In this document: piece by piece, positions 26,654 to 56,700 of the stretch
Layout of the letters: every line of letters starts with the position of its first letter
Numbering within the stretch: position 1 is the first letter of the stretch
DNA from: Pavona decussata
Lineage: Eukaryota
Direction: 5' to 3'
DNA: 64,000 nucleotides
Assembly (NCBI GenBank): GCA_977016875.1
Contig: CDRNST010000049.1
Coordinates: 3,224,001 to 3,288,000 of the forward strand
Notes under the pieces: model-generated
The model's database searches: none
What the model was told of the DNA's origin: nothing
What the model saw: the letters and a program-made list of their open reading frames with translations, nothing else
Translations under genes and position numbers: made by a program

Positions 26654-26782
26654 NNNNNNNNNNNNNNNNNNNNNNNNNNNNNNNNNNNNNNNNNNNNNNN
26701 NNNNNNNNNNNNNNNNNNNNNNNNNNNNNNNNNNNNNNNNNNNNNNNNNNNNNNNNNNNNNNNNNNNNNNNNNNNNNNNNNN
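26654..26782. other. Assembly gap (N run); further gaps at 39506-39699 and 49123-49275
   Basis: Runs of n. Confidence 1.
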
Positions 26783-27310: not shown

Positions 27311-30300
27311 TTAATAATAGAGGTAGTATAGTGCTAATATAACAGATTGAATGTGTAATAACATAGCAGTCCAGGCCTGATACGAAATACTGCCTCGTGA
27401 CATCGAAGGGGTTGATTTTTGCGCCACCGGAGAATCAGTGGTCTCATTACGTTCACCTTCCGGCTGAGATTTTGTAGTAAAGTATTCTGTAAGACAAAGG
27501 AAATGAAAAAAGTTATATTGAAGCTTTGGCGATGGTAACATGGGAATACATACCCTTTTGAAAGCAAAAGCAGTAATTGGTTATTTGTACGATAGGGGTG
27601 GGGGCACTGTGGGGGGTGGTGAAGGAAGGGTCTGGGACTGAGATGTGCTGCTCGCACTACTTGCAAGGCTGTAGTCTACTCATGCTGTGATCTGCGAAGT
27701 TTCAAAGAAAAATACTCATTTCCTTTATTCCCCCACAGGGGCTTGGCCTCTGTAGGCATCCTTGTAGCTCGAGCGTAATTATAAAACCACTTGCAGTTGA
27801 AATATACATTCACAAATCACTCGTAAAAAACACATTTGCGATTCACGATCACCCGCAACAAAAAACCATAGGAAAAATTCTGCAATCGGAGGCTTGGATA
27901 GTTCTAGACTAGTATCAAATTGCTTCTATCCTTATTTATATTTTTGTTGTACGAAACTCCCGCAAACATGTAGGATCAGATGGGATTCACTCAGGAAGTG
28001 CTCCCATCGTGGCACTGTAGCTTAGGTGGAAGAGCTGTGGATTACTAAAGCCGGCGACACACTTGGCGATTTGTCAGATATTGGCGCTATAATTCGTCGG
28101 CATTCGCCAAGTGTGCCCGTTCCCGCGATTTTCTACGCTCGTCGCTGCGAATCGTCAGTAAAGTGAACCAATCAGGTAGGGCGATTTTGACACATGACTT
28201 TTCAAAACGCCCCTCAATGGAGCCCGGGAACAAAGTTAAAGTGCCACATCGCCGCGATCGGTAAAAAAAAATCGCCAAGGGTGTCCCTATTAATCGGTGG
28301 AAAAAATCGGCGCTTATTGTGGACGCTTATTCGAGGGTGGGTGCTTATTATTTTCCTAATATTTTCAGCGAGTGAGGACATTTTTAAAGAATAACAAGTT
28401 CATTTCACTTCGACAAGACAAAATAAAGTGTAAAAGCTAACACGAACAAGCCATAAACAGTATAAAAGTTCATTGACTACCGGGGGCTATTTTGGAACAC
28501 AGCTGACGCTGACGCCCCTCTTACTTCACGCTGGGCTATTAGAGATGATTATTTTTGTTGGGAGTGGGTGAGGGTGGACGCTTATTAAGTTTTTGCACTT
28601 TCATGGTGGTCGGTTATTCGAAGGTGGGGGGTTATTATCACAACTACTGTTCAAACTCACCGTGTTTTGGTAATACCACTAGGCTCCTTGTGACTGCAGT
28701 ACTTGCTGGTCCCGTTGTGACAGTAAAGGTATAGTCTCCGGTGTCTGAAGCCTTTAGATTTTTTATGATCAAAACAGTCAACCAGTCCTCGTCTTTACTC
28801 AGCGTCGTGTGCAGTAAAACACGCCCATAACGAGAGGGGCTTAGCAGCTCCTTTCCTTTTCGCCATTCCATGTTTTCAAGCTGAAGGAATCCAGAGAGTT
28901 TCAATTACAATAGACCTTATTTGCTCCTTATCATAACTGCCCACGACAAACCAGGTGATGTTTTCAGGAGAATCGATCATATCTCTTTTTGGAAGTAAAG
29001 AATGCATGCCAGCGTGAATATGACATTTTAAAAGAGACTTTCCCCTATAGTACCCGCACATGATCTGTAATTGGGCACCAAAACAACGAAGCGAATAAGG
29101 TCTATTGCGCTGCAAAAATGTTTCTAGCATTTGTATAGCCACCGGATCACGCGAATTTCACAAATTTACTTTGACTGATGTCTACACACGTTACCAGACT
29201 TGCCGCCCTTATCAGCTCATTACACATAATTTTACCTATATTTCTTGAGTGTTGTGAAATGCCTTTCGTGTTTCAAACAATGACAGATATGCCGTGGCTG
29301 CTACACCAATCTAAACTCAGGAATTGTATTATCCAGTGATCCAGTGTTTTAAAAATAGTTTTAACCCTTGATTAAAATGTTTAAGTGTTTTTTAAGATTT
29401 TCCTATTTTTGACGTCATAAGCACGTAGATTTATTCATTTTCTTCAATTATAGCAGTTCTATTACTTTCAAAAACAGGCTTAAAATATACCATCACATTT
29501 ACTCCATTGCATGTATGCCAATCATTGACATTGAAAACCCAGCAGTATGCAGGATGTTTTTCCCATGAAGTCAACCTAGTTCAATGCCCTTAGCTCCCAC
29601 GAGTCTCCTATAGCTTAGTGGTAGAGCATATGTCCGAACTCTTAATCGGAAGATCTACAGGTTCGACTCCTGATAGGAGCACTCGGATTTCCTTTTTCCG
29701 AATATACCAGTGTCACTTTGAATAATACATCATTCTCACAACCCATGATATTTGGCCAGTCACATGATCAGAACAGAAAAAGGCGTAAACTCAAAACGAC
29801 ATACACGTGTGAAAATTGAAATCAGTGCCGATGGTCAAAGATCGCTGAGGTGCAAAACGTGACATGTTGCTTTTTCGAAATTTGAATTGTAATAGAGGTT
29901 ATGACGTCATAACACGTATATTTATCCATTTGCTTTAGTAGCCGTTCTATTACTTACAAAAAACAGTAAATTCTTACGGTTATAATGAAGGCAAGAAGAG
30001 AAAAATGGAAACTCCACCCCTTTTCTCCCAGCTTAAGAGATTTTTCTTTCTGCCGCGCGTTTGCGAACTGGCACTAGTTCTATGCGTGTAATGAAGAGTT
30101 TTAAAATTCATCTTCTTCACCATCATACATTTCACAAATAATATAATAATATAATAATAATAATAATAACAATCTTTATACAGGGAGCCCACATCACGAA
30201 AGTGATATTCAGTGGGGCCCTGTAGATTGAGAAATGATTTAACACTTACAATTATTTTAAAAATTACAATTATTTAAAAGTAGAAAATACAAAGTCGGCG

Positions 30301-33300
30301 GTAAGAAATAAAAATAAGAAATAATAATTAAAAACTAGCTAAAAACGCGCTCTTTGATACGTTGCTTAAAAATTAAAAACGATTTTATGTCTTTGAAAGA
30401 CTGTTCTAAAAGGTTCCATTCCTTAATACCCTGGTAAAGGAGTGTCTTCTTTCCGTAGTTAGTTCGTACTCGTGGAAGACGGAAATCATTCTTTCTCCGG
30501 GTATTATAGATATTATAAATAACACACTACAAAACACTTCAAAACCGAGCATCACAAAATACCGTCCCTAAAGTTCCCTAGCAACAGTTCTTATTCTGTA
30601 GTTAAAGATTGCCACGGCTCGTTTTCAGGCCTAAACGCGCTTATCGAGAAAACCCTGCTTCTTGTCCGAGGCTTGGGCCCAAATGCGATTCCAGATCATC
30701 TCAACGGGTGACGCCACATCTCATTGCGCGCGGCTTAGGACTGGGGACTAGGGTTCACAAAATACACAAACGCTTAACTGATAAAGTTCATCACTGACCT
30801 CTGGCTTTGGAGTACCACCTTTGACCGTTACATTTATGTTGATTTCATCAAAACCTTCGTATGCTCTCATGTAGACGGCGTGTGGCTCTACCACCAACCT
30901 TGGAGAAACTGAACGAAAACAAAAGAAAATAGACGAAAAATTACAACTGGTGCTTAGATTATAATTGTCCTTCTTGTCCAGTACTGGTGCTAACATTTTG
31001 GTTTTGGTCAGAAACAAAATCTCTTGCGCTTTGTACCTATCTATGAAAAGACTCTTCCTTAGAGGGGAATAGGACAAAATACAACTTTGCGAGTGTACGC
31101 ATTGGCTTTGTTGTCTATAGCATGAAGTATTTCTAACTCCCAGTACAGATTTGGGTCAAACCTTTGAACTATGACCAATCCGCGGGATGAAGATATTGTC
31201 ATGATTGGTGGGTGTGAATGCCGATTACTTCTTGTTAATTGGGATTTGGTTAATAACCGTGATTTGGAACTGTGATATTTCTCCGTCTCTTATCAACACA
31301 CCAAGCAGATGGCCGAGGGGATCGTTGGTAATGAGGACGTCAAACAAGGAAGAATGTAATTCTGAAAATTCAACGAAGCGGCGTAATTTTGTATCAAACA
31401 ATGTCTTTTCTTAGAAAGGTGAAATACCCACTTTATTATTCGTGAAATGTAAAAGGAGGATTTCTAGCGATATGCGATGAAGACCCCCTCCCCTCCCCCT
31501 AGACCTTTACCGCCTTAATAAACCCGGCAAGAAATTTAATGAGGTTTTTGAGCTCTACCACCACGACTATAGGTAAAGGAAAGAGCAAAAACTCGGTTTG
31601 TATGAAAGTGGAAGTTACTTGCGATCTTAAGGACGGTGCCTACGTTCTGCTCATCTCGGGAATGGTCCGAAAAACTTGGGTTTTTTTAATGACGGTGTCT
31701 ATTAATACGAAGGTATTTTTGCGCGGCTTATTACTATGCGGGAAAAGCACGGTTCATCAAGGGGTATGAGAATATGAACAGAAAATTGGTGGTAACTAGG
31801 GTTTTTTCATGGCTTCAATTTTGTCCCATGCATTGTTTCCATTTTAAGATTTTATAATTAATAATGCTCAAATATCTCTGAAATATGCGTAGTTACCTTC
31901 AGTTTTCTTTTGGATTCAAATCTTCTTCACCCTCCCCCTAAACTGCGCAAAAATATCTCTAGATGAGGAGGCACCATCCTAGTTAACTTCGAATTCCATA
32001 ACATTTTTAAACTGTCATGAAGATGATACTTACTCACAACTTTAACTTCCACTATTTCTTCAAACTGACAGTACTTTCCTACTGCTACAATGCGGTACGC
32101 TCCAGCTGTGTCAAACGAGATTCGCGCCAACTTTAGCTTCTTTCGAAATGACGAGGCTCCATATTTCTCGCCTTGAAAAACCAGTAAAAGAAATGTAGCT
32201 ACTTTGACTTTGAGCTTTAAACTACAACAATAATTGCCGACACCCTAACGAGTCCTATTAGTCAGTTATTTTGGATGGTTTTGCTGATAACTGAAGCAAA
32301 TGAAAAAGATTGATATGTCAGTAATTATAACCCTATGAAATGAGAAATTCACTCTGATCTTAAATTAATGGCACTTCTTATTCAAAACTTTGCAGATGCA
32401 TAATATACGATCGATACACTATTTTTGCGTTATTTTGAGCCATGCTTTTACTGGCGAAAACGTTTCGATGCATTCACACAGTTCTGGCTTTGACATATAG
32501 ACAAACAGGACAATGATAGTGTGAGAAATTTTGAACTTGTTTTATGATGTGAACTCGTAGTGCAGTGCCTAAAAAGAAGTGAGTACCAGGGCTCACTTGT
32601 TCGAAGAACGATTAACCTAGCCCAAGGTTAGGGTGAACTTCGATTCCAGTTTAATTACTAATCAATAAATTCAGTTTAGCTTAGAGTTAGCTTTAGAAAC
32701 ATTTCCAACGAGTGAAGCGTGACCCTCGTTTAACTTTTAAGCCTGGATTAGCGTCAGTGGGTTTTCGAGCAACCGGGTCCTCGACTGAACACATTCTACG
32801 TGAAAGAGAATATGTGTGAACTGTGGATGGATTATTAGTACATGTAAAACCATGGGAGTCATTCGTCGGAACGCAACCTTTGCAGCTGGGAAAAAGAAAG
32901 CCGCAAACATCCAGGCTTGAATGGGATTCGAATCCACCAACCTTCGATTGCTGGCGTAATGCTCTACAATTTCTCAAATGTCCCGATAAGCAATCGAGCC
33001 TAAAAATTATTTTAAGCTCCCTGGAAAGGTAGTCAGCGGTGAATCAATCTTTATTGGGTTTGAAAGCTTAGTTTTAGTTTCAAATTATTTACAATTTCAT
33101 GTAACACCTTGAGCAGGTGTTCACTGAAAATTACCATTTATCGATAAAAAGCGGATTTGAATACAAATGTACATACCGAGCCTGGAAAGTAAAGGAACTT
33201 TCGAGAGACTGGCCCCTGGTCGGTTTGTGAGTTATGGTGTTTCGTGATTCCGGTTCAATAAATCCTTATTTTTTTCCAGAGAAAAAGACTTTCAGCGATG

Positions 33301-36300
33301 TCTAAGTCCAGCATGGTAACCAAACAAATCCAGTGTGTTGTATTAAACAACTGATGAATCGAACTGTTCATTTTGATTAATTGGACCTTGATTAATAATA
33401 CAGTACAATAACCTCAATATAGTACTCTACCAGGAAATGCAAATCCCTCAGTATTTCTTTCAATCTGTGTCCCATTGTGATACCAGTCAACTCTAATCAG
33501 TGTTTTTTCATTCTTAATTTTCACTTCTAACAAGTCGCTGACGTCCTTGGTAGCCAAATGAGGGGACTGGGTCACCCACGTGATCACTGGTACATCTGAA
33601 ACGGTTTTTACAAGACGTCAATGTATGGGTATTTACACGGAACGGTATTGGAACCATGAGTGATATTGGATCTAAATTCATAAATAAGGAACGGTGTAGA
33701 AGGGGAACATAGGTGCATGTCCTTTAGTAAGCGTTCCAGGAAATACTTTCTTCCCACTAGTCACAATAGACCATATTCTTATTTTTTTTGGTATATTGTA
33801 CTGGATCTAGCTTGCAATGGAGGATCTTGTGGGGATTTATATTTTGGAAAAAAGTATTTGTATGTGAAAAGATTCTCTCCGCGTGTGCAAGCTGGTTTAA
33901 GTTCAATGTCGAAACCAATACAGTCTATTCAAATCGTAGACTGTGTAGGGAAATTGTGAGAAACGTTTTGTCATAAACGAAGGGGTCAATTTGAAAATCT
34001 ATTCACGACACCCCTGTCCTAACTGCGGTTGAGTACCTTCAGCTGGCGCGGGGAGAGTTAACGTAAGAATACAGCTATTTCAATTGGCGTTGACGGATGT
34101 GAAGGAAATTTGGTTTGACGGGGTCAAAGAAAAATCTTCGAAGTTGGCGGGATTTGAACCCACGACCTCTGGAGTAGATCACCAGCGCTCTAACCTGAAA
34201 CTGAGCTCTAACCTTCATTACCACGACCAGCTCTCAGCTGACCTCGTAGCTCAGTGTGCTACTTATATGTTCGTGTCTTCTCGATATTATTAATTTAATT
34301 GTGAATCTTTCAGTCCTTCTCCAAGAGAATAATGGCAAGTCATTTGTATGATAAGTTGACACATCCAACAGTAGTGTATTTTCTTTGTTTTGGACTGAAA
34401 CAAGCACTCCTTTAATACTACGTCTGGGTGGTTGATTCTTTGCCAAGTTCGTTTCATGCTTGAAAAGCACGCACAAAAATAACGCGGAAAATTATGGGGT
34501 GCTATCTAAAGTAAAATCATATTACCTTCAGTGACTATAATCCGGGACGTGCCTCTGGCCAAACCGAATGGATTTCTGACATCCACTTCATATCGCTCTC
34601 CTGTCTGTTGCAGGGTGGGCTGTGGCAGTCTCAGGATGGCAGAGTTTTGGGTAATCAGCGTTCGTGGTTTCCAGCTCCAGTCATTCACAATATACCAGTT
34701 GACGCTCCAAGCGTTTGGGTCCCGAATGTTGTCGTCGTGCAAGGTTACATTTACTTCTGCGGGTGCTTTTACGCATGCACCGAACGATTCAGGAAGTGAA
34801 ATGCGAGGTTCTTCTAAAATGGGTTGTTGGAATACAAATATATTCAAATTCAGTATCTTTTCTTGCCGGTAAAAAAAAAAATGTGCAATACAAGGCAAAG
34901 AGATCAACACGATAATTAGAAATAGTAGTAGAATTCGACCTCTCTCCCATTACAGGGATTCTATTTATTTTTGCTCTTAAAGTTAAAACTTTGGAATTCA
35001 TTCTGAACTGAACTGAACTGAACTGAACTTTATTTAACGTGGAAACATGCGCTTAGTTATATGGTTTAGTCAGAAACTACACCAGCTATTTTACAGGTAT
35101 GCCACGATAAAAATGAATAAATGAATGAATAAATAGATAAAATAAATGATATTCTCATTTATGCCCATCATCGTTGTGATCAAAGAACTCAAGGATTCCA
35201 AGTAGATTGTTTTGTTTTGATTATGGTTTTTTTTTTGTTTGTTTGTTTGTTTGTTTTTGGTTTTTTTTTTTTTTCGTATGTTTGCAAATGCAAACATTCT
35301 TTATCTCCAGAGCTTCCAATAAAATGTTTTGTTCTTTAGATTCACCGAGCTTGTGGACGAATTCTGACAGAAGGGGGCAAAGGCAATTGTTTGTAATGTT
35401 GATGATCATCAAGCTGGACAAGAGAGATTGCAATACATCAGATCATCTGTCAGTTGTACATGTGCGGCAAAAATATTCCCTGAGGGTCAGGGCATTTGCA
35501 TTTCTCTCTTCTAGTTTTATCATCTTCCAAGAATTTCAGTTAGTATACGATACCTCCAAAGATGATTATAGCATCGATTTGATAGGCAGGTCAAGAGGTT
35601 ATGACGAAAACTATCTAGATGTTGCACGTTTACAGCAATTCAAATTGTCTGCCAAAACTCGTTAATCTGTCCCATCACCCACCTTCATGTCGCAGCTCTA
35701 TAATCTTCTCGCTCCAGGCACCAGTTTTCACATCTTTGACTGTCACTCTGTAAGTTCCCAAATCCTCGGTAGTCATTTTCTCGATCTCTAGCACGTGTGA
35801 TGCCGAGAAATAATCCCCAAAGTAGGCCTTTTCGTAGGCGCGATATCGCCCTCGAGCTCGAAAAAAATTAACGTGGTCATTGTCCCCTTCCGTCTCCAGA
35901 GTAAATAACAGCGATGTTTCTCGATCAGGATCGTTCACTTTGTATTTAAACAACGTGGTCCAACTGTTTTTAGTATGACGTTTTAGCTTGTACCAGGCAA
36001 TCTCATAGGTGTGAAATTTCGCTGGATGAATGAAAGGATTCAAAAAAGAAGAGTAAAGTTTTGCCTTCAATCAAATGTTTCCAGCCAACAAAGTTGAGCG
36101 AAAACATTTAGCAATATAGGCCTAGGATATCATTGCACTTGGTGGTCATAACGTGGGTGTTTTACAAAAACGCGCCCGGATCACCAGTCTTTCAAAGTCT
36201 TTATATACTATTTGTGCCGCTGGTGTATATATAAGGTTTGGCACGTACTTTAATGCATAAAGAATTCAGAATTAACAACACCTGAAATAAAAACCTCGCC

Positions 36301-39300
36301 ACCATTTTATGTACTTAAAGACCTCTCAAAGGATGCCTTGACAATTATTTTACCCTCATCAGAAAGGATAATGTCGGCAAAGAAAAATTAGGGGGCTAGC
36401 CAGATTTTGGGCAATGACTTAGGTATGAAATACGTGTTCATCACTTACGACTGAGTTTTGTGAATATTTTTGTCTAGATGAAACATTTCTGTTGTGATAT
36501 TTCCAAACATTGATGACCTCACAAAAATTGTCTTAGTCTAGCCTAGTATAGTGCCTCTCGATTCTTGACTCAGCTTCTATGCGATTGAACAGGTAGGAAG
36601 CCAAGCACATTCCTTCAAGGAGCTCTCGTCAAATGTTTCAAATGAAACCTCTCTGTCTGTCGGTCTGTCTGTCTGTCTGTCTATCTCAGTCTCTGTTTCT
36701 GTCCAAACAAAAGTAGAGGGCAGTTGTCAATTGACTCTGTCCTGTTACTGTCCCTGCTACACCCTTCCTCTTTCCTTGCACCTGTCTTGCATGCGTTGAT
36801 TTTTATATCATTTTTTTTTTAATTGGTTACCTTCTGTGGCGATACAATAAATAACTAAATAATATATAATTAAAGTGTTCTTCCAAAATGCAAATTTCTA
36901 ATCATGCAAACAATCAATATAGACAATATAGAAGAAACTGATCAACTTAGCCCTCTCACTTCCACAACTACATTTTGAGTCTGTGGATCAAATCCTACGG
37001 TGTATCCATTAAGATGAAAGCTCCTAGGTAATTTTAATTTTAATTACAAACAAAGAAGTTTCGGAAATTTATCTCGATCGTATACTCTCAATGGATGCCC
37101 ATTAAAAACTTTATTTCTTTCTCTTGAGTAAGCCATGAATGGCTTGCTCAAGAAGATGGAATCATCTTTTTTGACAAAATAGCTTTTCGTTAAGCATTAA
37201 ACATTGTGACTTACTTGCTCCCTTGATGAAATACGGAAAGTTCCATTCCCGATGATTTTTTTCAGGCTTTTTATTAGGATCGTTCATCTTGTAAACGTTG
37301 CCAGGTAGATCATGCGAAGAATAACATCGCTCTTCCCACAAAACAAAGTGATCAAATCCTTTTTGCAGAACCAGTCTGCCACAACTTGCCAACTGCTCGA
37401 AGAATTTTTTTCCTCTTGGTACACGCCCCAAATAGGAAAGGCTCCACCCGCGGTCATCAATATAGTTCCTCGGATTTGCTACAGTGAAGTATGCTGTGTT
37501 TGTAGAGAAAATATAGCATGATTATTCTTAGCGGTCCATAAAATGTGGATGGCAGTGTACATGTACATTTCTTTGAACTTTGGAGTCCAACCTCTTTGAA
37601 GGCTGGCTGCACTGTAAGTTTCTAGGCCGGTAACTTCTACTTGTTCGCTTGTTCGTGTCAATAAAGTTTGAACAAGTTTTCCTTCATGACTCGTCCTTGA
37701 CAATTTATATTTGTTGTGTGACTAAGCCTTCTTGTGAAAGCATAATAATCTTGTATAAGGCAAGATTTTGTTGACAAATTTGGACAAGGATGGACACATT
37801 TTATGGAATGAATTATTCTTGCTGGTGCAAACGACTTGCTCGCCTAATAAGTCTTGTTACTTGTTGAATGGTGACTGAAACAGTCTTTTGCACACCAGCT
37901 TGTACAATTATCTGTACTTCTAACATAACGTACAAAATTACTGAATGCTGATTGATCAAGACAGAGGGCATTGGTATTCTTTTTACCGAGCGCAGAATTG
38001 CTCGCGTCCATTTAGACGAGCGGCAAAAATACTAGCTCCTGATTGGCATTTGGTTGATTAGGCCTGTTCCAAACGTCTGCTACTGCCGTGCCGCACTTAA
38101 ATCAATTTGACACGGCAGTAGCACGACAGTGGTTTCAAACGTCGAATTTAATTCAGTCGCGCCAAATTCTAAAACATAGGCAAAATATATTAAAATAATT
38201 TATGAATTTAGTTCGGCACGGCAATAGCACGCCGTTTGGAACAGGCCTAATCAACCTAAATAGAAATGTCCTTTTATACACTTACGAATTCCCGTAACAA
38301 TAACTCCTATAGATGCCACTGAACCGCTTGCATAAACTACTGCAGGCTTTCCCCATACCGGCATTCCACCATCAATAGACTGATCTACTCGTTGTTGAAC
38401 TATGATTTGAGGGGTCTCTATAAGAATGGGAAGCAAATCAATCAATTAATCAAATAAGAGGGCAATACAGGCGGGAGAGGAACTGAATTAATTGATAAAT
38501 TTAGTTAGGAAGGCAGCCATGCAGTCTGCCAGTCAGAGTCAGTCAATCAGTCAATCAGTCAGTCAAGTAAGTCAGTCAGTACATTAAAAATCGAACCGTA
38601 ATCTATCAGTTGATGTAACGTTCAGAGAAATCAGATGAACGTTCCATGATAGAGATAGAATTTGCGGTCACCAGAAATACAATAACATAAACATAGACCT
38701 TCCTTCCGCAAACGATTCTGTTTTGACTTCTTTCTGGACCACATTTAAGGTTTAACGTTTGGTTTTCTGCTACTATGGAATAAGGTATGTTTTTGTTTAA
38801 AACAAATCATTTACTTTAAGTTTTACACTTTCGGGCACAGTGCTAGATTAATGATCTTACCAAAGAGAGTGTGCCACATCGGCTCAGCATAATATGACAT
38901 AGAAGATTGCCATTCTGGAGTGTCTATTCCTGATAACAAGTACAACAATGTAGCATATTGATAAGAAGAACGTATCTCATAATAGCATTCTGGCTACAAA
39001 CATTACAATACAATACGGCAATACACCGTTATTACCTTATTTTGAAAGCCCGTGGTTTCAACTTAATCCTTTAAGTTCCAATTATTTTTTTAATCATAAC
39101 TAAACAAAATTCTCGAATCTGATTGGCTATCAGCAGCCATGATTTGAACATTAGTAGGGCAGAGTACGCATCATGCCTGGTGTAATTGGACAGTACGCGT
39201 CATTTGCGCGCGCTGTAATTAAATCGATCTCGAAAACTTTTAAGTTTTTTAACTTTTAAGTTAAAACTCAACTATTAATCCATCAAAAAGTTAAACTGTT

Positions 39301-45300: not shown

Positions 45301-46053
45301 CAAATCAATATGGTATAGTTACTTAACCCTCACTTACACCGAAGGGAATTAAAAATTTGATACATATTGATTGAAGTCTAGGCACCCCAAATATGAAACA
45401 GTTCTCCAACCTTGTGTTGGCTGTTCTTTATATGGTTTGAGATAAAGCTATGTATAACGAGTAATAAACTGCTTGCATTTCATCTTGCAGGAAAAAAATG
45501 GCTGCAGTCGTAATGAAATAGAAACTGGTACTTACTCGTTCACGTTCTTCTGTACTGATTACATCCCAAGAAAACTCATCCAGACTGTATTGTATCACAT
45601 AACCTGTAACCCAACGAGGTTTACTGTGACCAGAATGCCCTTGAGTCGCAAATCCATCAATGAACCTCTCTGTTAACAAGTCGATTTCTAAAGAAAGGAA
45701 ACAGCGTTCACACAGGGTGTCAAGAAGACGATGGTAAAAACGGAAAGATAAATGGAAATAAGGGACGCCTCGGGGTTCATTTTAGCAGAACGTCTGTTTG
45801 GAAGGCCTTGCACTATGTAAAAACGTGACAAAAATTGCACAAACTTCGCACGTGTCGACGGGCCTTTAACCTCCCCTAAACATTTTGATTTAATTTTGAT
45901 GAAAACACCTCGGAATTCCCCTGTTGAGATGGCACCTAAAACCGCTTTCGCGTAATCAAGTAAAAACAATTCCTCTTGTTTGTGGAAGGATCAAAAATAT
46001 CCGGCTCTACGATAATGCACTATTGAACAATTATTCCACGAGAGCGCGTTGGG

Positions 46054-46101
<48 letters not shown>

Positions 46102-47598
46102 AATCATCTCATAGCAACAAGCGTGAGTGGAATAATTGTTTTATTAAAAACAATCACGAAATATTGCTAGATTTTGCGGATTTCCGCTTTGCGAGTAACA
46201 ATTAGAAGACAATTTAATGGTCTCTTTTTCTCGGGCATGGTATAATAGCTCATACACCATGGCCGCTAAGCCAATCAAATCGCTCGAATTGCATTACACA
46301 ATGATCCAGTTTTTAATAATAAGGGTAAGCTAGGATTTCGAAGGACCAAGTTGCTGGGAAGTTCGGAGGATGAGGATATGATGTTCTCTACAAAATGAGA
46401 ACAAATGATTTAGAATTAAGAACAAATTATTAATCTTTCAAGGCTACCCCTTTTAAATGTACTACAGTGAGCTGGAAATAAAAAAAACGACATTTGTATA
46501 TCAGTATTTTCCTTTAATTATCTTGCTGGGAACTCCAGAATTTTCCAAACCATTTCACTGATGTAGTATGACCAGTTTTATTTACCTAAGTACTCGTTAG
46601 GTATGTGGTATTTCTTCCCTCGTCGTTCGTAATTTTCCACGTCCTTCACGCACCAGCCTCCGTTATGGTTGAGGCGTGCATTCCGGGCTCTCGTATTGAG
46701 GCCAGCCCTACTGAATGTAGAGCCTGTTATTTGAGAGTCTCTGATTTTCTTGGATTCCATTCCAAGCGCTGCGTTACAACCTGTACATGGCAAGAGAATC
46801 AGTTGTGATTTTTACCAGATACTGAAAAGGAACAGTAACCAACGCGCTCAGTACATGGGTTTACCTTTTAAAGGAAAATTTTAATGTCTAGTTTATTTTC
46901 ACATGTTTGAACAATTGTTTGTACATATTTTGGCGCCTTGTTTTTGTTATGAATTTTTCTCACTTTTGGAAACCGCCTTAGAACTTTTGGATTTTGGCGC
47001 TATATAAATTGTCATTGTAATCGTAATTGTGATTGTAATTGCAATTGTGGTGGGTATTCATCTGCAGTATTTGTAGCTGGTCAAAAAGTTATGCCTGCTA
47101 ATGATCCACAGATTCCGAACCTTATTAATGAAACAAAAAAATGGCGCTGGGGTAAACACTTTCTTCGCGCCTTCTCTTTTGTCCACTGTAGCAAGCGAGT
47201 TCCTGTGTAATTGCACAATTATAAGCGGTAAAATAATTGAACTTCTAATTATTTAATATATATAATGATTCGGTTTAATAAATTGTGATTTTTTGTTGCT
47301 CACTTTTTTTTTCAGTGACTACTAAATGGAGTAAGTTAACTCACCGTGCGAGGGTAACCCAGAGACTGTTGTTAGTAACAACGTTTGGAAACCCTAAACA
47401 GTGCTATACCAATAACTTGAGAAGTCAATTAAACCGTTCCGAGTTTAAAAAATTTCCCTTCTCATAACTGGGATTCTTAAGCTTATTTATCAAGGTACCC
47501 GGCTGAAAACTACTATGACGAAATTCGCGTCTTTCTAATCTGAGCCATTTTAAAACATAAACAAGTTGTCTGTACATGAAGAAGAATGCTGTTTACTT

Positions 47599-47638
<40 letters not shown>

Positions 47639-48295: not shown

Positions 48296-48328
<33 letters not shown>

Positions 48329-49449
48329 TAAACTGCGTATATAAAATAGAGTTGTCCTGCCTATTTTACCCCTGTTTGAGGCTAGGAGCTTCGGGTATCA
48401 AGGGAAATTAGTGGTTATTAGATGTACCTGGCTTCCTCTTTCCCTGATATGGTTCGGGCTTTCCTGCAAATAATAAGATTCGCAAAATGTATATAAATAG
48501 GTTCGTAAACAGACGAAAGCTGACGCTATGTAGGCAACGATCCTAAGAAAAATAAAACAAAATAATAAAAAGTAAGTCACTACAGCGACGGAAACAAAAA
48601 CATGTCTTGAAAATATATGTTCACGTTACTTGGACTATTTCAACTTGTCAGACAATGGTTGCGGTCACAATTATGCTTTTATTATGGTGAGCTAGTGATT
48701 TCAGCTCGATTTGTCACCACGACATTGTAGCTGTTTACAACATGTTTGAATTGATGCACATTTATTGTATTGTCAGAAAGCGTACCGCGATAATGCCTTA
48801 AAATTGCAGATGGCTTACATGGGCGGCAAGGCATGTTATGACAGTATAATATTAGGAAGACTCTAACGTCACGAAACACAGCCTTTTTATGAAAATATGT
48901 CGTTTTGAGAATTGATGGCAAAAACCTTAAGAGAGCAGGTGTCAATAAAAAAGCGAAAGAAGCCAGGTCGCGTACTTAAAACTGGCCTGGCGAATCACGC
49001 TCACGCGCGTAAAAGACGAAGCAGTGATATTCTTGTGAAGAGTGCGAAGTAAACTTAGTCAACAAAGTGCCCAACAAACATCTGGGTAGGGACAGCATAC
49101 CCAGTGGGCATCCTTGAAATACNNNNNNNNNNNNNNNNNNNNNNNNNNNNNNNNNNNNNNNNNNNNNNNNNNNNNNNNNNNNNNNNNNNNNNNNNNNNNN
49201 NNNNNNNNNNNNNNNNNNNNNNNNNNNNNNNNNNNNNNNNNNNNNNNNNNNNNNNNNNNNNNNNNNNNNNNNNNNAAAGAATCCAAACCGACCTTCCACC
49301 GCACAGATGTTTTAATAACTGAGTTACAGGTAGACTCGAAGCATGCGAGGCCATTTATTAGGTTTATATGTGACCCGCGCCCTAAATACTAAATCAGCGA
49401 TGTTAATAATGTTAATGATGACCACATTATAACTATAATGATAACCTGG

Positions 49450-49502
<53 letters not shown>

Positions 49503-52500
49503 GTGGTGTTAATGGAAAATAAACAGGATAGTTTCCTTATTAATACGCACCTGGTAGATTACCAAATATGTCCAAAGCTAAACAGTCGGTGGGACCCTGA
49601 CGCGATTCGTATATGTGGAAGTGCCTAGCGTAGATAGTGGGCATAATGTCCAGGATACCCGCACATTGATGTTTTTCTTCAAATTCAATTCTAATTCCCT
49701 GAAAGCAAAGGAATAATCATTAATTCCGGTCAACCTTCTCGTATCTTCCGGTTTTTCTCTCTTCCCACTTCTTTGTAACGTTTGGCGACAGTTTTGTGTC
49801 TTGCAAACAATTATCTTGATATGCACTTTATCAACATCCGCGTACACTAAAAATTAACCCTCCCCATTCAAAATTATAGAGCAACTGTATGCTGAATATT
49901 CCTATCATTAATTGGTACAGCCTAAATTTTTCATTCTTTTTACAAGTATGCAAACTTTCAAAAAGAAAATTTTAAAAAAACACATGCTTGCTTGTCTTAA
50001 TTTTGATTCATAAGGATCTAATAGTCAGTAATGAACAATCCACAGCCACAGCATCGTGTGGAGAGAAAAATTGGACAGTTTGGGTTTTTGGTGTGCTAGC
50101 CCGCTCAGTTAAACGAAACCAAACCATATAACAGACCACAATGCATCTTGTAATACACTTGGGACCAGATTCCATATAACTATGCTTTTATACCTATGTA
50201 AATCCTTTAAGAGGGCTATACACCCCTTATCTATGTCAAATTAGTATAAATCTACTAGTGCTCTATCACGAATGTCGTTCTCTGATTAGCTACGCTACTC
50301 GCTATAGATAGTGAGTAGCAGTTTTCAAAAAAATGGCGGCCGCTTCGTCGCGTTTTTGAATTGTCTGCGATGAGGAAATAGATAATTTACTTGTTTAGTT
50401 TTGAACGACTAGTAGATTTATATTCACTCTCGATTTCTATGTGTGATAGAAATATTCCCGAGATCATAATCTAATTGTTAAATAGTACCATAATATTATA
50501 TTTGAAAACCAGTCTCGCTCCCAGAGAGGGAGGCAGGCCTCCCAATTTACAAGCTATGGGAACGGGGTTGATTTCAAAACAATACCGTGTGAATAAATAC
50601 AAATGTTTGTTTTTAATACCTGGTTAGGCTTGTCGCTCAACTGGTTGTATGTCCCAGAAAGGCTCCAAACTTCATTGTCAGTGCTATATCGTAGCTCTAA
50701 AGGCCGTCTTTTCCTATTCGGATGGCATTTCCCATCATGCCTAGGTTGCCCAAGAAACACAATTCGCGAGATTGCGTACAGCTCCCTCATGTCAATTCGA
50801 AAAAACGGGGACACATCGTTGCTAGAAGCCTGGGAAACAGATACAGGATATCACTCACGAGAAAGCTTGATTTAGGAAGATTTAGCTTTTCTGATAATTT
50901 GGGACGCTGACGCTTGTTGTAGCCATTATAGCCTTTTGCAGCTATTTCCAGTATAAAACCTGGCGTCCAATGTGCTTAACCGCAGTTGTATAAAATTGAA
51001 AAAGCTAAAACTGAGCCGGAGAGACAAAACAGAAAACTAAAATATGTCAAGCTCCTTTGATCCGATAAAACATCTAATCAGTAAAGTCAATAGTGCTTTT
51101 AAAAGGACGGTAGACTTCCTAATACAGGCCTATTTTTGCGCGGTTAATGACTATGCGAGAAAAGCAGATCAAGCAAAGGCTACTGAAATTCAAAATTATG
51201 CAGTTTTCAAAGATAACTTAGCTTCAATTTGGAAAATAGCTTATCCCATACGTTGCTATATATGTTTTTTGAAGCATTTTAGAGTCATTGTTAGTTACTT
51301 TTAAGTAACTAACAACAACGTATGGGATAAGCTATTTTCCAAATTGAAGCTAAGTTATCTTTGAAAACTACGTGGTTGCCCCAGTTTATATTTTAGATTC
51401 CAACAATTTTCGTAAGGACCTGTTTTTCCAGCGTTTTTATAAACCGCAAAAAAATTAAATACCTTTGAATTAGTGGGCACCAAGAAACCGGACCATCCCG
51501 AGATGCGCAGAAGGTATGCGCAGTATCAAAAGGGGCATCGTCCTTAAATCGATGTTAAAAATCACAGTTAAAGGGACTATGTCAGCTGGGGCACATGCGC
51601 AGTAGAGTCCAATTGAGACTAATTTGCATAAAAAAGCGTCGCGGGATTTTTGTTTTTCCGCTTTTGCAAAACCTTTCAAAAACATCGCAACACACAGCTT
51701 CTATAAATACAAAAGAGCGTTTGTAAATGAAAAATTCAGCTAACTTTCCGAAGATGAACACGATTTATTCAAACAGATGTAAACAGCGTCCTGAACTTGA
51801 CTCTGCAATGGTATTTGAAAAGGTTGGGCCAATGGTTTCAAAGTGCTTCTCATCAAGGCGAGGATACGCCTGGGGTGACATAGCCCTTTACCATGAACGT
51901 CATCACTGTCACTGTACTATTTTTTTCTATTCACATCTGTAAAATTGTGAAAGTATATTGGTTAAGGTTGAGTTGTGCACGCACTTAATTTTCGCGGGCC
52001 GGAAGCTTTTCTTCGGACCTCCTCGCCTTACCACATCCGGTCTTATACAAGTCTGCTTGAGACTTTATTTTCCGTAGTACTTCAAACAGAAAGCAACACG
52101 GAGGTATAATAATCGCTCTTTTCAACATGTCCGTTTAAACCCGTGTTTTTTCATACTTTAAGTGTTGTTATTCACTTACAGGAATGCAAAATAACATCTG
52201 CCCAGGTTCAATGTAGCGCAGTCTCAGAGGGGATGGACTGCCTCTTATGGTTTTTAACCACAACAACTTGACTCTGCCTTGAGTGGTCCATAATCCCAAG
52301 GACTGAATGTCGTCTGTAAATCAACCACAACTTTATTAGTTTTTCAGTCTTCTAGCATGCTAACAAGGCCTAAAAATTTAGGACACCAATAAAATACAAG
52401 CATGAACACATTGGTCACACAACTTGCATTTTGCTCTGACGCTAATGCTTGAAACGTCAACTTTCGAATCTCCGTACGGTGGTCAAATTATTTTATCAAC

Positions 52501-55500
52501 TCTGTTGATAAAACCAGATATTCGTTTCCACTCCCCTGCCAAGGCAACACCAAAGTTTTTTTAAGGAACTAACCCTCTTATCAATCAGTAATAGGCAATG
52601 AATATTGATTGATGTCAGTCAGTTGACTACCAGGCTCAGTCAAGTTATAGTTATTAGTAGATAAGGTCTCTCTTGATTAACCTGCCAACAGCTCAAGATT
52701 GGTGAGACGTTAGTGGAAGAAGAGGAACTTAACGAATATTTCACGAGAGCGCGTTGGATTTTAGATTATAGCTAGCCAACGAGACTATAATCATCTCCTA
52801 TCCAACAAGAGCGAGTGGAACAATTGTTTTATTACAAACAATCAAGAAATATTGCTTAATCTTGCTGTTGTCGTTTTGCAAGAACAACCAGAAGACAATT
52901 TGATAGTGGCTATTTCTAGGGCATGATGTAATGGCTCATATACTACGGCCGCTCACTGCGGGAGCCAATCAAATCTCTGGAATTTCATTATACATGCGAT
53001 GATCCAGTTTTTAATGGCAGTTTTTAACTCGTGAAAGCGCGCATGCGCAATGAACGAGTTATAGCGATGGTGGACTTTTTGACTTGGTTGGTTGGTTGGT
53101 TAGTTCTGTCGTTAACTTTCGGGCATGCGCAGTGAATGAAATTTAAATTCAATTAGTGGGAAAAACACGCAAAAATTTCCTGTTCACAGCGCATCAGGAT
53201 ATTCTCATTCAATCTGTAGAGAATAATTTGACAATCGTTTTAGTGTAAGAATGGAGATTTTTCGTCGAATCTGAGCAAAGTTCTAGGTTTTGTCGTTTTT
53301 TCCACAAACTGCGGCGTCTTTTAAGAATTTAAAATAATTTAATTGAAAAATTCAATTAGTGGAAAAAACACGCGAAAATTTTCTTTTCACGGCGCATCAG
53401 GATATTCTTACTCAGCCTGTAGAGAATAATTTGACAATTATTTTAGTGTAAGAATGGAGATTTCTCGTTGAACCTGAGCAAAGTTATAGGTTTTTCGTTT
53501 TTTTCCACAAAGTGCGGTGGCTTTTAAGAATTTAAAAATAATTGAATTTAACAATAATTGGAATTTAAGAATTTAAAAATAATTGAATTTAACAATAATT
53601 GGATTTAAAAGTAATTAAATTTAAAAATTCAATTACTGAAGTGTCGGCAAGATCTTTGAATAAACAAGACGATTTTTTATAGAGTATTTACGTGACTTGT
53701 GTTAATGTATGTTTAGCACTGGTGGCCTTATTTGTTGTAGGCCTCACCGATTTTTTAACCTATCCTCCCTTCACGATTGAACTAACTGAATAGTTTTACT
53801 CAGAAATATTGCGTGATATTGCGTTGCGCTACTTGAAAGTTTGCCGCCAAAAATTATTTCCCGCCAGAAAATGTCTGGCTGAAAGAAGCACTCTCAACTG
53901 ATAAATTCACTGCTAATCATAACTTTTTGCATACATGAAAACTCGACATCTTTCATCATATTTTTGCTTCTCATACAAAAGTATTATATCAGGTAGATTA
54001 GTTTGCTGAAAAACATTAGTTTGGCTGTCAGTTTTTACGCGAAAGCGGAAAGTGCCATGTCACCCATCAGTGACGTTGTAAACAAAATTATGCAAATTTC
54101 TGGTGAAATGAACAATTTTAGATTTCTTCAGTTTTCATAGAGGTTTCAGAGGAAAAAAATGTTTCATTTTCGCAGTTTACATCTGGTAATTTATGGGAAA
54201 GCAAAAGGACGCGGTCGATGAATTTTCATCAACTGTTTAATACATACCGTGCAGAATTTAGTAAAATGCATGTGTACAGGATCAAAACCTTTTTGGTACG
54301 CGCATTGAATAATGAAGCAAAATACAGACAACTAGCTTTCATTGAAATAATTCTTATTTAGCAAGAGTTAGTCATATTTCAAATTATTTTTACTTGAAGA
54401 TTGCGTGGACTGAACTCCAACGGAAAAATTTCACGCATTTATGCCGCGCATGAAATGTAATGCGGGACTTTGTTCAACAGATTTCCCTTCGTGAGATCAG
54501 CTCGAGCAAAGTAGCCTGCGTAGCTGGCGGTTTTTATGGGTGGGCTCACCGGAAAGCCGGGCACGAGGGCCGAAAAGATTTTTTAGTGCAAGAATGGTTA
54601 TTTCTCGTTACATAATCGGGCAAAGATATAATTTCTTTTAGCTTTCAAGGAAGTGTCCATAGCCGTCTTAATTTCAATTACTGATGTGTCATCTGCATTC
54701 ACGAGTTGGCTCACAGGAGCCTTTGATTATACTAGAGGACGCATTAGCCGTCTGGACGGACTTAGGCAGGTATTCCCAGTTCGTCTGGCTATTCGTTTGT
54801 AGTATAAAGACGGGCACAAGACGCATTCTGCGTCTGGACGAACTATTTTTCGTTGTGCGTCGTTCCGAGACGAACAACGGAAGATAGTTCGTCCACACGC
54901 ATAATGCGTCTTGTGCCCGTCTTTATACGAGAGATAAATAAATAAAACATGATATATTGATAAAAAAAACACACAATTTCAATCAATTCAAGTCACTTAA
55001 CTCAGTTTGTGTCTTTGAAATAATTTTTATAAAGCAACGGAGTGTGCTTTTCTACACCCGAATGTCGGTTTCCGCAGTGATTCCAACGCTAACTGAATTA
55101 GCGACTCACCTGAACAACCAAATACATATAACTTGATACAGGTGTCTTGGTAAGGAAATGTTACTGTGTTAAGGCGAAGATATCTTGCTGCTGCAGGTCT
55201 ACTTTTGTACTTTATCCTCCTCGACGGTGATGTCTTGTCAGGCTAAAACAGGTAAAATACAAGAGAAAGAGAAAAAGTAGTAATAAAGATACTTTAAGAT
55301 GATTAAAACCGGCTTAAAAGTGCCAGAAAATAATAAGACTGTGATTCAAACTTAAGACTGACTCTATATAACAAAGATATTTGGGAGAAAATGCTTTAAC
55401 AAGGGAAACAAACAGGAAATGCCCAATCGAGGTGCTTATCATGGCTGCAAAAGTTAATACGTACTTAGCATGTTTCTGTATCGAATCAGGAATGTACGTA

Positions 55501-56053
55501 CAAACTGTAATAAAATGAAATGTACGAGATTTCCTATAGTCAAAAGTCACATTGTAAATGTAAAATAAAAGATAATTGCAAAAGCATTGCACCCTAAAAA
55601 CCGTTTTTAAAACTCGTCCTTACTAGGAATGCTTATGCGAAGTTATTACTTCAAGCTGTTTGACTTGATCCTCGTCGCGCCTATGCGGCAGATAATTATA
55701 AGCCTTATAAGGTTCACTTCAAGAAGTTTGCAAGGAGTGTTTTACGGTGATAATAGACTGTACTCAGCTCTCACTCTCGTTGATTACTTTCTTGTTAATA
55801 GTGCTTAGATGTAATATATAAAAATATAGCTTACGTATAATTGTGTCCATCTATTTCTATCCAAACTGTATTGAGCGTTAACCCAATTCTCATGCATTCT
55901 TCCGGCTCCATTCGGCCCATTGAAATAGTCCAGTTCGACTCTTGAAATGAAGCGTGGATACATGAGATCAAACACAAGATAGCCCCTTTGTCTGGGTACA
56001 CACCATTTTATATCCGAGCCAGTCCCATCTGGTCCATAGTTTTTAGTGTGACT
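27311..56053 (-). CDS. Cell-surface protein: 3x F5/8 type C (discoidin) + ~5 Ig-like domains + Ser/Thr stalk + GPI-anchor signal; open path of 20 exons (~1196 aa), 5' end unresolved, may be a decaying pseudogene
   Basis: Phase-consistent GT-AG exons: 55835-56053, 55110-55242, 52180-52313, 50620-50829, 49551-49698, 46586-46780, 45536-45687, 43976-44117, 41383-41542, 39997-40193, 38861-38929, 38286-38417, 37215-37478, 35683-36021, 34526-34813, 33431-33595, 32034-32171, 30799-30908, 28661-28880, 27311-27486. The third discoidin domain is canonical (CNAALGMESKKIRDSQITGS..ARNARLN..GWC..EYLEIDL..FATQG..WVTGYVIQYSLD..IRARYVRFIPVTW..ICMRVEIYGC). The first two are divergent (ARYLRL..CIKLYVFGC; IYARHF..CLALDIFG). 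Ig motifs: IAWYK..LEIEKMTTEDLGTYRVTV; VDWYHNG..DTAGAYRIVA; VKGGTPKP..EWRKG..LIIKNLKASDTGDYTFTV. The C-terminus is SRGSISYQAWTAMLLHIQSVILALYYLYY*. The junctions around 39.7-41.5 kb are the least certain. Confidence 0.75.
28047..28300 (-). mobile_element. Partial reverse copy of the 5576-6253 MITE family (empty site for the nested insertion)
   Basis: The reverse complement aligns by eye with 5650-6130 across the insertion point (..CGCCCTACCTGATTGGTTCACTTTACTGACGATTCGCAGCG..). Confidence 0.85.
29605..29720 (+). repeat. tRNA-derived SINE-like repeat / pseudo-tRNA
   Basis: Acceptor-like stem CTCCTAT/ATAGGAG, A box TAGCTTAGTGG, B box GGTTCGACTCC. The anticodon arm is irregular (8-nt loop, extra bases) and it continues into a non-tRNA tail CACTCGGATTTCCTTTTTCCGA. 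Confidence 0.75.
30140..30510 (-). mobile_element. 5'-truncated LINE (L2/CR1/Crack-type) 3' end
   Basis: The minus strand reads YNTRRKNDFRLPRVRTNYGKKTLLYQGIKEWNLLEQSFKDIKSFLIFKQRIKE, the typical ORF2 C-terminus, followed by a 3' UTR and a (TAT)n tail. Confidence 0.85.
32860..32970 (-). repeat. tRNA-derived repeat fragment; related fragments at ~34130-34260, ~57750-58085 and ~59225-59381
   Basis: Reverse B-box-like GGGATTCGAATCC / GGATTTGAACCC together with the CAGGCTTGAA and GCTCTAC motifs shared among copies. Confidence 0.65.
38061..38247. mobile_element. Harbinger-like palindromic MITE
   Basis: GGCCTGTTCCAAACG..TGCTA.TGCCGTGCCG / CGGCACGGCAATAGCA..CGTTTGGAACAGGCC with TTA/TAA flanks. Confidence 0.85.
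40795..41167. mobile_element. Tc1/mariner-type MITE (CCGT..ATAAGCC family); degenerate relative at ~22520-22770
   Basis: TA+CCGTTA ... TTTACGG+TA; the interior CCCCCTCTAGTTTTGTT.GTGTT.T.AGTTTTAATTTTGTTCCAAATATTGACG is shared with the 22.5 kb copy. Confidence 0.75.
41770..42012 (-). pseudogene. Ig-like exon of the discoidin-Ig locus carrying an in-frame TGA
   Basis: A 243-nt phase 1-1 AG/GT segment reads VPANSFHLDSVGLALKAGLPFVEVCDAF..FHWPDYIDVRMREVLVYR*AVKRDHCIHEIYL..; the stop at 41831-41833 sits in a Y-x-C-like position. Confidence 0.5.
42058..42298. mobile_element. PIF/Harbinger-like MITE, CTG TSD
   Basis: GGCCCAGTTATTCAAAGCCCGATTAAG ... GCTTTCGAACAC..ACTGGCCC, CTG at 42055-42057 and 42299-42301. 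Confidence 0.8.
46026..46320. mobile_element. Hairpin-containing non-autonomous repeat (Crypton-like family); second copy at ~52733-53015
   Basis: AACAATTATTCCAC..GCG.GTTG.GTATGAGATGAT..ATAGCCAAC ... GTTGGCTATAATCATCTCATA.CAACAAGCG.GAGTGGAATAATTGTT palindrome (46026-46140) plus a shared tail ending GATCCAGTTTTTAAT. The superfamily assignment is from memory. Confidence 0.7.
47506..48327. mobile_element. Kolobok-like non-autonomous DNA transposon
   Basis: Right end TGATCATAGTAGCACT+TTAA, degenerate left end CTACTATGACGAAA; other TTAA+RG ends of Kolobok-like type occur at ~31627, ~51545, ~51568 and ~61920. Confidence 0.6.
49450..49501. repeat. (GAT)n microsatellite
   Basis: Read directly. Confidence 0.95.
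51202..51369. repeat. Perfect 54-bp inverted repeat with 60-bp spacer
   Basis: 51202-51255 is the exact reverse complement of 51316-51369. Confidence 0.95.
52433..52575 (+). mobile_element. Penelope-like element terminal fragment with a degenerate hammerhead-type core
   Basis: CTCTGACG-CTAATGCTTGAAACGTCAACTTTCGAATCTCCGTACGGTGG..ATCAACTCTGTTGATAAAACCA resembles the abundant anthozoan CTGACGAAGGGCTAACGCTCGAAACGTCAGC repeat, with an internal deletion. Confidence 0.6.
53140..53636. repeat. Tandem duplication, ~200-bp unit x2 plus a ~43-bp duplication
   Basis: AATTCAATTAGTGG.AAAAACACGC.AAAATTT..T.TTCAC.GCGCATCAGGATATTCT.. recurs at ~53147 and ~53349; TTTAAGAATTTAAAAATAATTGAATTTAACAATAATTGG occurs twice. 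Confidence 0.85.
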
Positions 56054-56226
56054 CTGCATTTCAAATAAAACCATTTCAGATTGGTTATTCGGGTGGTGCG
56101 GTGGGAGCAAGGGGAAGGGGATGGGGTGGAGTGTGTGTTTTGAGGGATGTGATGTACCCTGTGGGGGGGGGGGGTGTTCCTTCCATAGTCGGGAATAATG
56201 ATTTATATCAAGCTACGTTATTTTAC

Positions 56227-56700
56227 CGTTATCCATTATGGAAAATTTTCAAAACTTCAGTGCATATTAAACTATCAACAAGACTGGAAACCCCTACACT
56301 TGACGTTAGTGCAAACTGGCGCAGTGTTATCTAGGCTTGATTGTATGCTAAATTAACATTTTTCACGACGTGTTAAAATTTGAAACTGTTTAATGAACAA
56401 TTTTTCTGAAAACACTAATTCCAATTTTTTAGAGCATGTTTCCGTGACATACATGTGCAGTTTGTTCAGAGAAAAGTAGCAGTCTTCAAATGACAAATAT
56501 TAATTTAAAAAAAGTCAGTACTAAAAACTGCTTACCTAAAATACTCAGACACTGATCAATTGTGAGTAGTGTAGCTGATCTAACAACAAGTAGTCACCTT
56601 TTTTAGGCCGTTGCTCCCAAATTTTCCGTGAAGTTTGACAGACGTGATTATACACTGCACAGTTACATGGAGACTCGAAAGCCTCAATGTTGGCTTTATA
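56227..56700 (-). pseudogene. Probable damaged first two exons and TATA box of the discoidin-Ig gene
   Basis: TATAAA (minus strand) at 56695-56700. An exon ending at the strong donor AG|GTAAGC (56536) reads LLVVRSATLLTIDQCLSIL but has no ATG (AAAAAAG-GTG-A instead). The 67-nt segment 56227-56293 reads GVSSLVDSLICTEVLKIFHNG* and is one base short of joining the next exon in frame. Confidence 0.4.

Follow-up and report, generated by a model that had tools for sequence, protein, structure and literature searches.

What kind of protein does a coral build from a long row of short exons that a list of open reading frames shows only as fragments, none of them long, and does this protein belong to any known family of cell-surface receptors? 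The question is raised by a 64,000-nt stretch of the stony coral Pavona decussata (contig CDRNST010000049.1 of assembly GCA_977016875.1, positions 3,224,001 to 3,288,000 of the forward strand), to which we refer, at its full length, as the window. A first-pass annotation had linked 20 exons in this stretch into a receptor with two very divergent and one canonical F5/8 type C (discoidin) domains, about five immunoglobulin (Ig)-like domains, a Ser/Thr/Pro stalk and a tail of the glycosylphosphatidylinositol (GPI) type. These elements are present, and they are spread over 22 exons on the minus strand (57274 to 27311), the first of which lies outside the interval originally assigned to the gene. 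All 22 have AG/GT borders, and they join into a single open frame of 1235 codons that ends at the TAA codon 27313-27311. A linker exon, an insert in the second Ig-like domain, a signal-peptide exon and a further discoidin domain are additions made here, and the gene probably comprises 26 exons in all. We consider it reasonably likely that the locus is one single-copy stony-coral gene that encodes a surface protein with a discoidin head, an Ig stalk and a GPI tail. Exons are named below after the domain they contribute to, all are on the minus strand, and coordinates refer to the window unless another locus is named.

The centre of this gene model is documented by RNA, whose placement covered window positions 39990-45989. 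Record 1 of run X1 is a 2868-nt contig that aligns in four pieces (45691-45539, 44117-43975, 41542-41386 and 40193-39992), and its internal coordinates 1106, 1258, 1400, 1439 and 1599 match five exons to the base. These are D3e2 (45536..45687, 152 nt; distant orthologue 82% identical) and D3e3 (43976..44117, 142 nt; distant orthologue 85% identical), the latter forming the end of discoidin domain D3, a 39-nt linker exon m, and the exons X (41383..41542, 160 nt; orthologues 87% and 48% identical) and a (39997..40193, 197 nt; acceptor exact, orthologues 91% and 66% identical), which encode the first and second half of the Ig-like domain Ig1. The linker exon came to light through 38-39 contig letters left unplaced between D3e3 and X and a depth of about 38 nt in the bin 42590-42789; these two facts together call for a 39-nt exon, for which an exact match between AG and GT exists at 42700-42662. 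It encodes 13 residues in phase 1-1, and a similar peptide is found in a distant coral. At its 5' edge, the first contig piece exceeds D3e2 by four bases, and these match the last four bases of D3e1 (46586..46780, 195 nt), the start of D3, whose orthologue is 61% identical (E 1e-25); upstream of the placed pieces the contig continues for another 1105 nt. Hence, the canonical discoidin domain and Ig1 sit on one spliced RNA, and the single transcript unit across the discoidin and Ig modules that the first-pass annotation had assumed is confirmed at this junction. Three coral metatranscriptome runs contributed only unspliced contigs, 90-95% alike, that cross the exon borders (39990-40330 and 43630-44586); they stem from a related coral, whose DNA or pre-mRNA entered the RNA libraries, and carry no information on splicing.

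The assignment of the head as a series of discoidin domains derives from Pfam scans that were run exon by exon, so that domains split over exons were scored in parts. Initial scans of the open-frame fragments had located a canonical F5/8 type C domain on three of them, near 46.7, 45.6 and 44.0 kb, with a weak match near 56 kb and weak Ig matches near 35.9 and 28.7 kb. D3 is canonical: the F5_F8_type_C profile (PF00754; cut-off 28.2) gives 28.2 bits for D3e2 and 31.6 bits for D3e3, at profile positions 39-82 and 87-127, respectively. For D1, exon D1e2 matches the same family at profile positions 19-80 with E 0.024 and 15.2 bits, and an alignment of D1 with D3 spans the whole domain (z = 12.2). 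D2 is the outlier, with E 0.07 for F5_F8_type_C_2 and E 0.1 for F5_F8_type_C (13-14 bits) in D2e3, an alignment with D1 at z = 4.6 and none of significance with D3. F5_F8_type_C is the only or the best Pfam match of each discoidin domain, and each time at the right profile positions. The terminal Cys pair of F5/8 type C domains forms the disulfide that closes the barrel; this pair, one Cys at the domain start and one at its end, is present in D1, D3 and the upstream domain D0 described below, and D2 lacks it. The proposed division into two very divergent domains and a canonical one thus stands, with D3 reaching the Pfam cut-off, D1 matching weakly and D2 lying farthest from the family.

D1 begins with exon D1e1 (57213..57274, 62 nt, phase 1 in and 0 out), which carries the N-terminal Cys of the domain. 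It is a block bounded by AG/GT exon borders that is 92% identical at the protein level in another coral, and in one frame only. Since D1e1 is open over its full length, enters through a phase-1 acceptor and lacks the context of a start codon, the coding start must be farther upstream. The core of D1 is encoded by D1e2 (55835..56053, 219 nt; orthologues 90%, 69% and 49% identical) and its end by D1e3 (55110..55242, 133 nt), with an ARY.R motif, the C-terminal Cys and a phase-1 donor; the distant-coral orthologue of D1e3 is 57% identical (E 3e-13). D2 is put together from four exons. D2e1 (52180..52313, 134 nt), which provides a linker and the start of the domain, was the top-scoring phase 1-to-0 candidate among all that fit the phase, and its long form is backed by a distant-coral orthologue (48%, E 5e-11) that aligns from the first residue. 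Two other versions of this exon were dropped: a 53-nt candidate at 51618-51566, which would leave an intron of 23 nt, and a 62-nt version, as the orthologue supports the exon of 134 nt. D2e2 (51463..51542, 80 nt), with a W-C-P motif as in D1 and D3, was chosen by sequence, phase fit and codon usage and is the least certain exon of the model. D2e3 (50620..50821, 202 nt; orthologue 54% identical, E 7e-17) would supply the domain core and D2e4 (49551..49698, 148 nt) its end; the orthologue of the latter (61%, E 3e-18) lies upstream of D3e1 on the same contig, and an alternative donor at 49563 leaves the phase unchanged. D1e3, D2e2, D2e3, D2e4 and D3e1 were all placed by motif, splice site and phase, and codon usage adds modest support for the exons of D2.

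Two side observations concern stretches that resemble discoidin exons. A short coral-genome repeat with copies at 57800-58100 and 59150-59420 on the minus strand contains open frames that mimic exons, and a weak tblastx match of 59253-59152 to D1e2 was dropped as it sits in this repeat. An open frame of 131 codons that lies between m and X of the distant coral (L034:10001-10396) has no counterpart in the window; it contains a short D3e3-like stretch (45% identity over 22 residues) and may be a decayed domain fragment or a chance similarity.

Downstream of the linker, the exons a to j (40193 to 27311) were placed from conserved blocks and AG/GT borders in comparisons with coral loci, among them L014 and L016, and they form five Ig-like domains: X with a, b with d, e, f with g, and h with i. 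The usual Cys pair is present in Ig1 only. Exon e (34526..34813, 288 nt) holds the entire Ig3, and its AlphaFold2 model (predicted local distance difference test, pLDDT, of 88) has seven strands. With this model Foldseek returned at least 500 matches to Ig domains, with template modelling (TM) scores of up to 0.77; those to Ig domains of Nav beta2, FGFR, Robo1 and NEGR1 are 0.70-0.77, with 0.76 for Nav beta2 and FGFR D3; the predicted fold of exon e is an Ig-type beta sandwich. The remaining halves were each scanned as half-domains. Exon i (28661..28880, second half of Ig5; orthologues 66-93%) matches Pfam I-set with E 3.7e-4 and 20.9 bits against a cut-off of 23.7. Exon d (35683..36021, 339 nt, the remainder of Ig2; orthologues 44-97%) gives weak scores for V-set (17.4 bits) and I-set (16.4 bits), and exon f (33431..33595, first half of Ig4; orthologues 78-94%) one for Ig_3 (E 0.2, 12.6 bits). 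The domains are completed by exon b (38286..38417, 132 nt, first strands of Ig2; orthologues 95%, 86% and 84%), exon g (32034..32171, second half of Ig4; orthologues 84-91%) and exon h (30799..30908, first half of Ig5; orthologues 77-92%). No FN3, CUB or MAM match was obtained in the Pfam scans of the exons.

Ig2 is peculiar in that a 92-residue module, encoded by exon c (37215..37493, 279 nt, phase 1-1), is inserted between its two halves. The module has two conserved Cys residues and is kept in four other species, including a distant relative (46% identity in exon d). Exon c has no Pfam match; its model is poor (pLDDT 55), showing a long helix and a hairpin, both of low confidence, and the fold search gave no significant match, the yeast Wsc1 domain appearing only at E 3.7.

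The last exon, j (27311..27486), encodes what follows Ig5: a stretch of 36 residues, 42% of them Ser, Thr or Pro, with the sequence S-R-G-S near its end, a spacer, and 21 hydrophobic residues that form the very C-terminus before the stop codon TAA. The SRGS run lies 5-8 residues before the hydrophobic end, and both features, the former as S-R-G/A-S, are kept in two orthologues. In a GPI signal, the attachment site is made up of small residues, and a short polar spacer separates it from a hydrophobic stretch that reaches the last residue. Judged by inspection of this anatomy, GPI anchoring is the most likely fate of the coral protein.

How the locus has evolved can be read from other coral genomes. 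The exons D0e2, D1e2, D2e3 and d each match only themselves in a paralogue search of the 602-Mb genome, and several further coral assemblies contain orthologues at 65-94% identity; the exons b, c and d are also kept in a relative farther away. A word search with the 35.9-kb frame, which corresponds to exon d, retrieved single-exon relatives of 44-94% identity from other coral assemblies, and one with the open frame of D2 gave no match. The contigs around these relatives proved to be genomic DNA, not cDNA, and were used to compare exon order. In a close coral (locus L016) similarity to the window extends nearly throughout; in a distant one (L014), at a rate of synonymous substitution (dS) of about 1.2, it is confined to ten sharp blocks. 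A contig of the distant coral carries D1e2, D1e3, D2e1, D2e3, D2e4, D3e1 to D3e3, m, X and a in this order, each of them open, and L014, a locus that overlaps with it, continues with exons b to j; exons a to j are intact in the orthologues. The ratio of nonsynonymous to synonymous substitution rates (dN/dS) is 0.07-0.20 for the Ig half in comparison with four other corals and 0.27, 0.15 and 0.14 for D1, D2 and D3, rough values since dS is saturated for the distant pair. We are therefore dealing with a single-copy, conserved gene under purifying, not diversifying, selection. All domain borders of the gene are in phase 1, as expected for shuffled modules. The first-pass annotation had spoken of modular cassette exons; many exons are indeed in phase 1-1, and no alternative use of any of them was seen.

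With its phase-1 acceptor, D1e1 leads beyond the window. Within 57275-64000, much of which is repeat-derived, no convincing signal-peptide exon was found. Better candidates lie about 16 kb upstream, 5-9 kb past the window end on the minus strand (L032:5146-8993, corresponding to contig positions 3293146-3296993), where a signal-peptide-like exon is followed by three exons of a discoidin domain termed D0. In the next 10 kb, the putative signal-peptide exon (L032:8993-8897) is by far the best candidate: it combines a start codon with a hydrophobic core and has a consensus phase-1 donor. Scores for the D0 exons are 13, 16.5 and 12 bits, the matched profile positions (2-41, 54-82 and 86-122) are colinear, and by these matches D0 would be a fourth, canonical discoidin domain. 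When the upstream exons are included, the 26-exon join is a frame of 4305 nt that runs from ATG to TAA over 1434 codons; we infer from this join that D0 is linked to D1 in a gene of 26 exons. An intronless frame of 307 codons for a rhodopsin-family G protein-coupled receptor (GPCR; Pfam 7tm_1, E 3e-27) is situated at 60354-61277 on the plus strand. It probably lies inside the long intron between D0 and D1e1, on the opposite strand.

Two assembly gaps interrupt introns of the gene. One (49123..49275) falls into the D2e4/D3e1 intron and the other (39506..39699) into the a/b intron; both introns are in phase 1 on either side, the domains flanking the two gaps are complete, and the exons flanking each gap are neighbours in other species, a and b being adjacent in two other corals. 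The a/b introns of these two corals have only a repeat in common, which gave matches in all frames and on both strands and none by blastn, and the D2e4/D3e1 intron showed no coding-like conserved block, just short two-strand matches. In a strict sense, the gaps might still hide a phase 1-1 exon. In the distant coral, a retrotransposon with reverse transcriptase and endonuclease frames on the opposite strand (L014:2882-7246) stretches the a/b intron to 6.4 kb. A third gap, at 26654-26782, lies about 530 nt past the stop codon.

Several points weigh against the model of one anchored protein. All searches and folds used single exons, and the joined protein was checked only for frame, stops and composition. 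D2 is very divergent, and its discoidin identity rests on weak scores; D1e1 and D2e2, the two shortest exons of D1 to D3, were not detected on the distant-coral contig; and the junctions from D0 to D1, within D1 and within D2 have no RNA support. The hydropathy of the tail is moderate (1.46 over 19 residues), and no AATAAA or ATTAAA signal occurs at 26790-27310, between the stop codon and the third assembly gap, so that the 3' end of the mRNA was not located. Finally, the last piece of the X1 contig ends at 39992, that is 5 nt beyond the exon-a donor at 39997, and no downstream exon of the model begins with these 5 letters; the junction of a with b is therefore not shown by RNA. This contig end is also what gives substance to another reading, in which the locus makes mainly, or in addition, a short secreted protein of the discoidin domains and Ig1 that has no anchor, the part from Ig2 to Ig5 with the GPI signal being separate or rarer. 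All five preceding introns had been removed from the RNA that runs past the donor, the donor itself is weak (GTATAT), the read-through frame stays open for 35 codons up to a stop at 39892-39890, and AATAAA-type signals follow at 39757 and 39094. Set against this, the 5 nt are all that was seen, as the placed stretch ended at 39990, and they may stem from a retained intron or pre-mRNA; in the distant coral the read-through tail is not conserved, and conservation stops at the donor. Moreover, purifying selection acts on exons b to j, none of which offers a start or a signal peptide; the phase-1 acceptor of exon b agrees with the phase of exon a, and the exon order is kept in three other species. 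The latter observations argue for the junction of a with b, and we regard a locus devoted mainly or also to the short protein as unlikely.

Doubts about the two ends of the protein, and about its evolutionary character, can be weighed in the same way. The hydrophobic C-terminus might be a membrane-spanning anchor retained in the mature protein instead of a cleaved GPI signal, and its 21 residues would suffice to cross a membrane; yet nothing follows them that could act as a basic stop-transfer flank, His and Gln interrupt the stretch, its hydropathy is moderate, and the conserved run of small residues 5-8 residues before it has the standard anatomy of a GPI signal, which makes a retained anchor improbable. 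Somewhat more weight, though still that of a minority view, is due to the notion that the signal-peptide exon and D0 belong to a different gene and that the gene in the window starts at another first exon. The link between D0e3 and D1e1 has no evidence from RNA or synteny, the two exons are 11.9 kb apart with the GPCR gene between them, and the transcript contig extends no farther than about D1e1 or D1e2. On the other hand, no stop precedes the consensus phase-1 GTAAGT donor at the end of D0e3, and an upstream exon of phase 1 is exactly what D1e1 requires; the join falls at a natural domain border, D0 shares the single-copy state of the gene, and the interval from the window end down to D1e1 offers no convincing alternative. 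The first-pass annotation had gone further and pictured a lineage-specific, fast-evolving receptor for allorecognition or for the recognition of symbionts or gametes. D1 and D2 do change about twice as fast as D3 at the protein level (dN 0.39 and 0.31 vs 0.16). However, dN/dS is well below 1 in every domain of this single-copy gene, six of the seven differences between transcript and window are synonymous, and orthologues exist across several coral genera, with a partial relative farther out. Polymorphic recognition loci of the Hydractinia Alr type are multi-copy clusters that diversify fast, and neither trait is found here; we thus hold a recognition receptor of this kind to be very improbable, and neither the lineage-specific, fast-evolving character nor the flavour of allorecognition is supported.

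We therefore return to the anchored protein with discoidin head and Ig stalk as the preferred reading. Its product of about 1434 residues would enter the secretory pathway, and a GPI anchor would attach it to the outer face of the cell membrane. From the membrane outward, the predicted order is the Ser/Thr/Pro stalk, a rod of five Ig-like domains with the 92-residue insert in Ig2, and the discoidin head, which the rod would hold away from the membrane. If the head behaves like discoidin domains of known function, its loops would bind a glycan, a phospholipid or a ligand of the collagen type, and a role in ligand binding and adhesion may be envisaged on the same grounds. The predicted protein does not extend into the cytoplasm, so that it could signal only with the help of a partner in the same membrane.

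How does this protein relate to known surface receptors? Like the contactins and IgLONs, which work with partners in their own or in the opposing membrane, it has a row of Ig-like domains that a GPI-type signal would hold on the surface, with no cytoplasmic part. Contactins, however, consist of six Ig and four FN3 domains and have no discoidin domain, whereas the coral protein has five Ig-like domains, no FN3 match, three to four N-terminal discoidin domains and the insert in Ig2. An N-terminal discoidin domain on a surface protein is also a trait of Caspr/CNTNAP and neurexin IV; in Caspr, laminin-G and EGF domains come after its single such domain, and a transmembrane helix leads to a cytoplasmic tail; none of these four features is present in the coral protein. 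In bilaterians, Caspr pairs with GPI-anchored contactin, and the coral chain carries both kinds of modules. Tandem discoidin domains recur as b1 and b2 in the neuropilins, co-receptors with little or no signalling capacity of their own; there they are accompanied by two CUB domains and one MAM domain, with a transmembrane helix and no Ig domain, while the coral exons have no CUB or MAM match. MFG-E8 (lactadherin) and EDIL3/Del-1 likewise possess tandem discoidin domains, which bind phospholipid or matrix; they are secreted, combine them with EGF instead of Ig domains and have no anchor, and would thus resemble the possible short isoform only. In its way of working, the coral protein would come closest to the GPI-anchored Ig adhesion molecules, contactins and IgLONs, with the gain of a discoidin head such as Caspr, neuropilins and MFG-E8 possess. 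It is a member of none of the contactin, Caspr, neuropilin and MFG-E8 families, because the FN3, laminin-G/EGF and CUB/MAM domains that define them are absent.

It is a new arrangement of known modules. As the first-pass annotation had suspected, no named family and no paper with a discoidin-Ig-GPI architecture turned up in the literature, and protein searches gave single-exon fragments only. Word and full-library searches with exon d recovered no full-length or spliced relative, and since all that came back were fragments of one exon each from genome and metagenome assemblies, this absence weighs little. A bolder idea is that one chain joins the roles that contactin, as a GPI-anchored Ig rod, and Caspr, as a discoidin head, play in bilaterians, and that read-through past exon a also yields a soluble form. 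We see this as a speculative and rather improbable scenario; if true, one locus would supply a receptor on the membrane as well as a secreted protein that competes with it or acts as a bridging lectin.

The value of the finding is limited in that the gene shows no sign of diversifying selection. If the model holds, corals possess a conserved anthozoan surface protein whose GPI-anchored Ig rod carries a multi-domain head of the lectin, lipid-binding or collagen-binding type, and this protein would be a candidate for cell-matrix or cell-cell adhesion in these animals. The gene would then bear on how early animals had arranged the Ig and discoidin modules that serve adhesion in the nervous systems of bilaterians.

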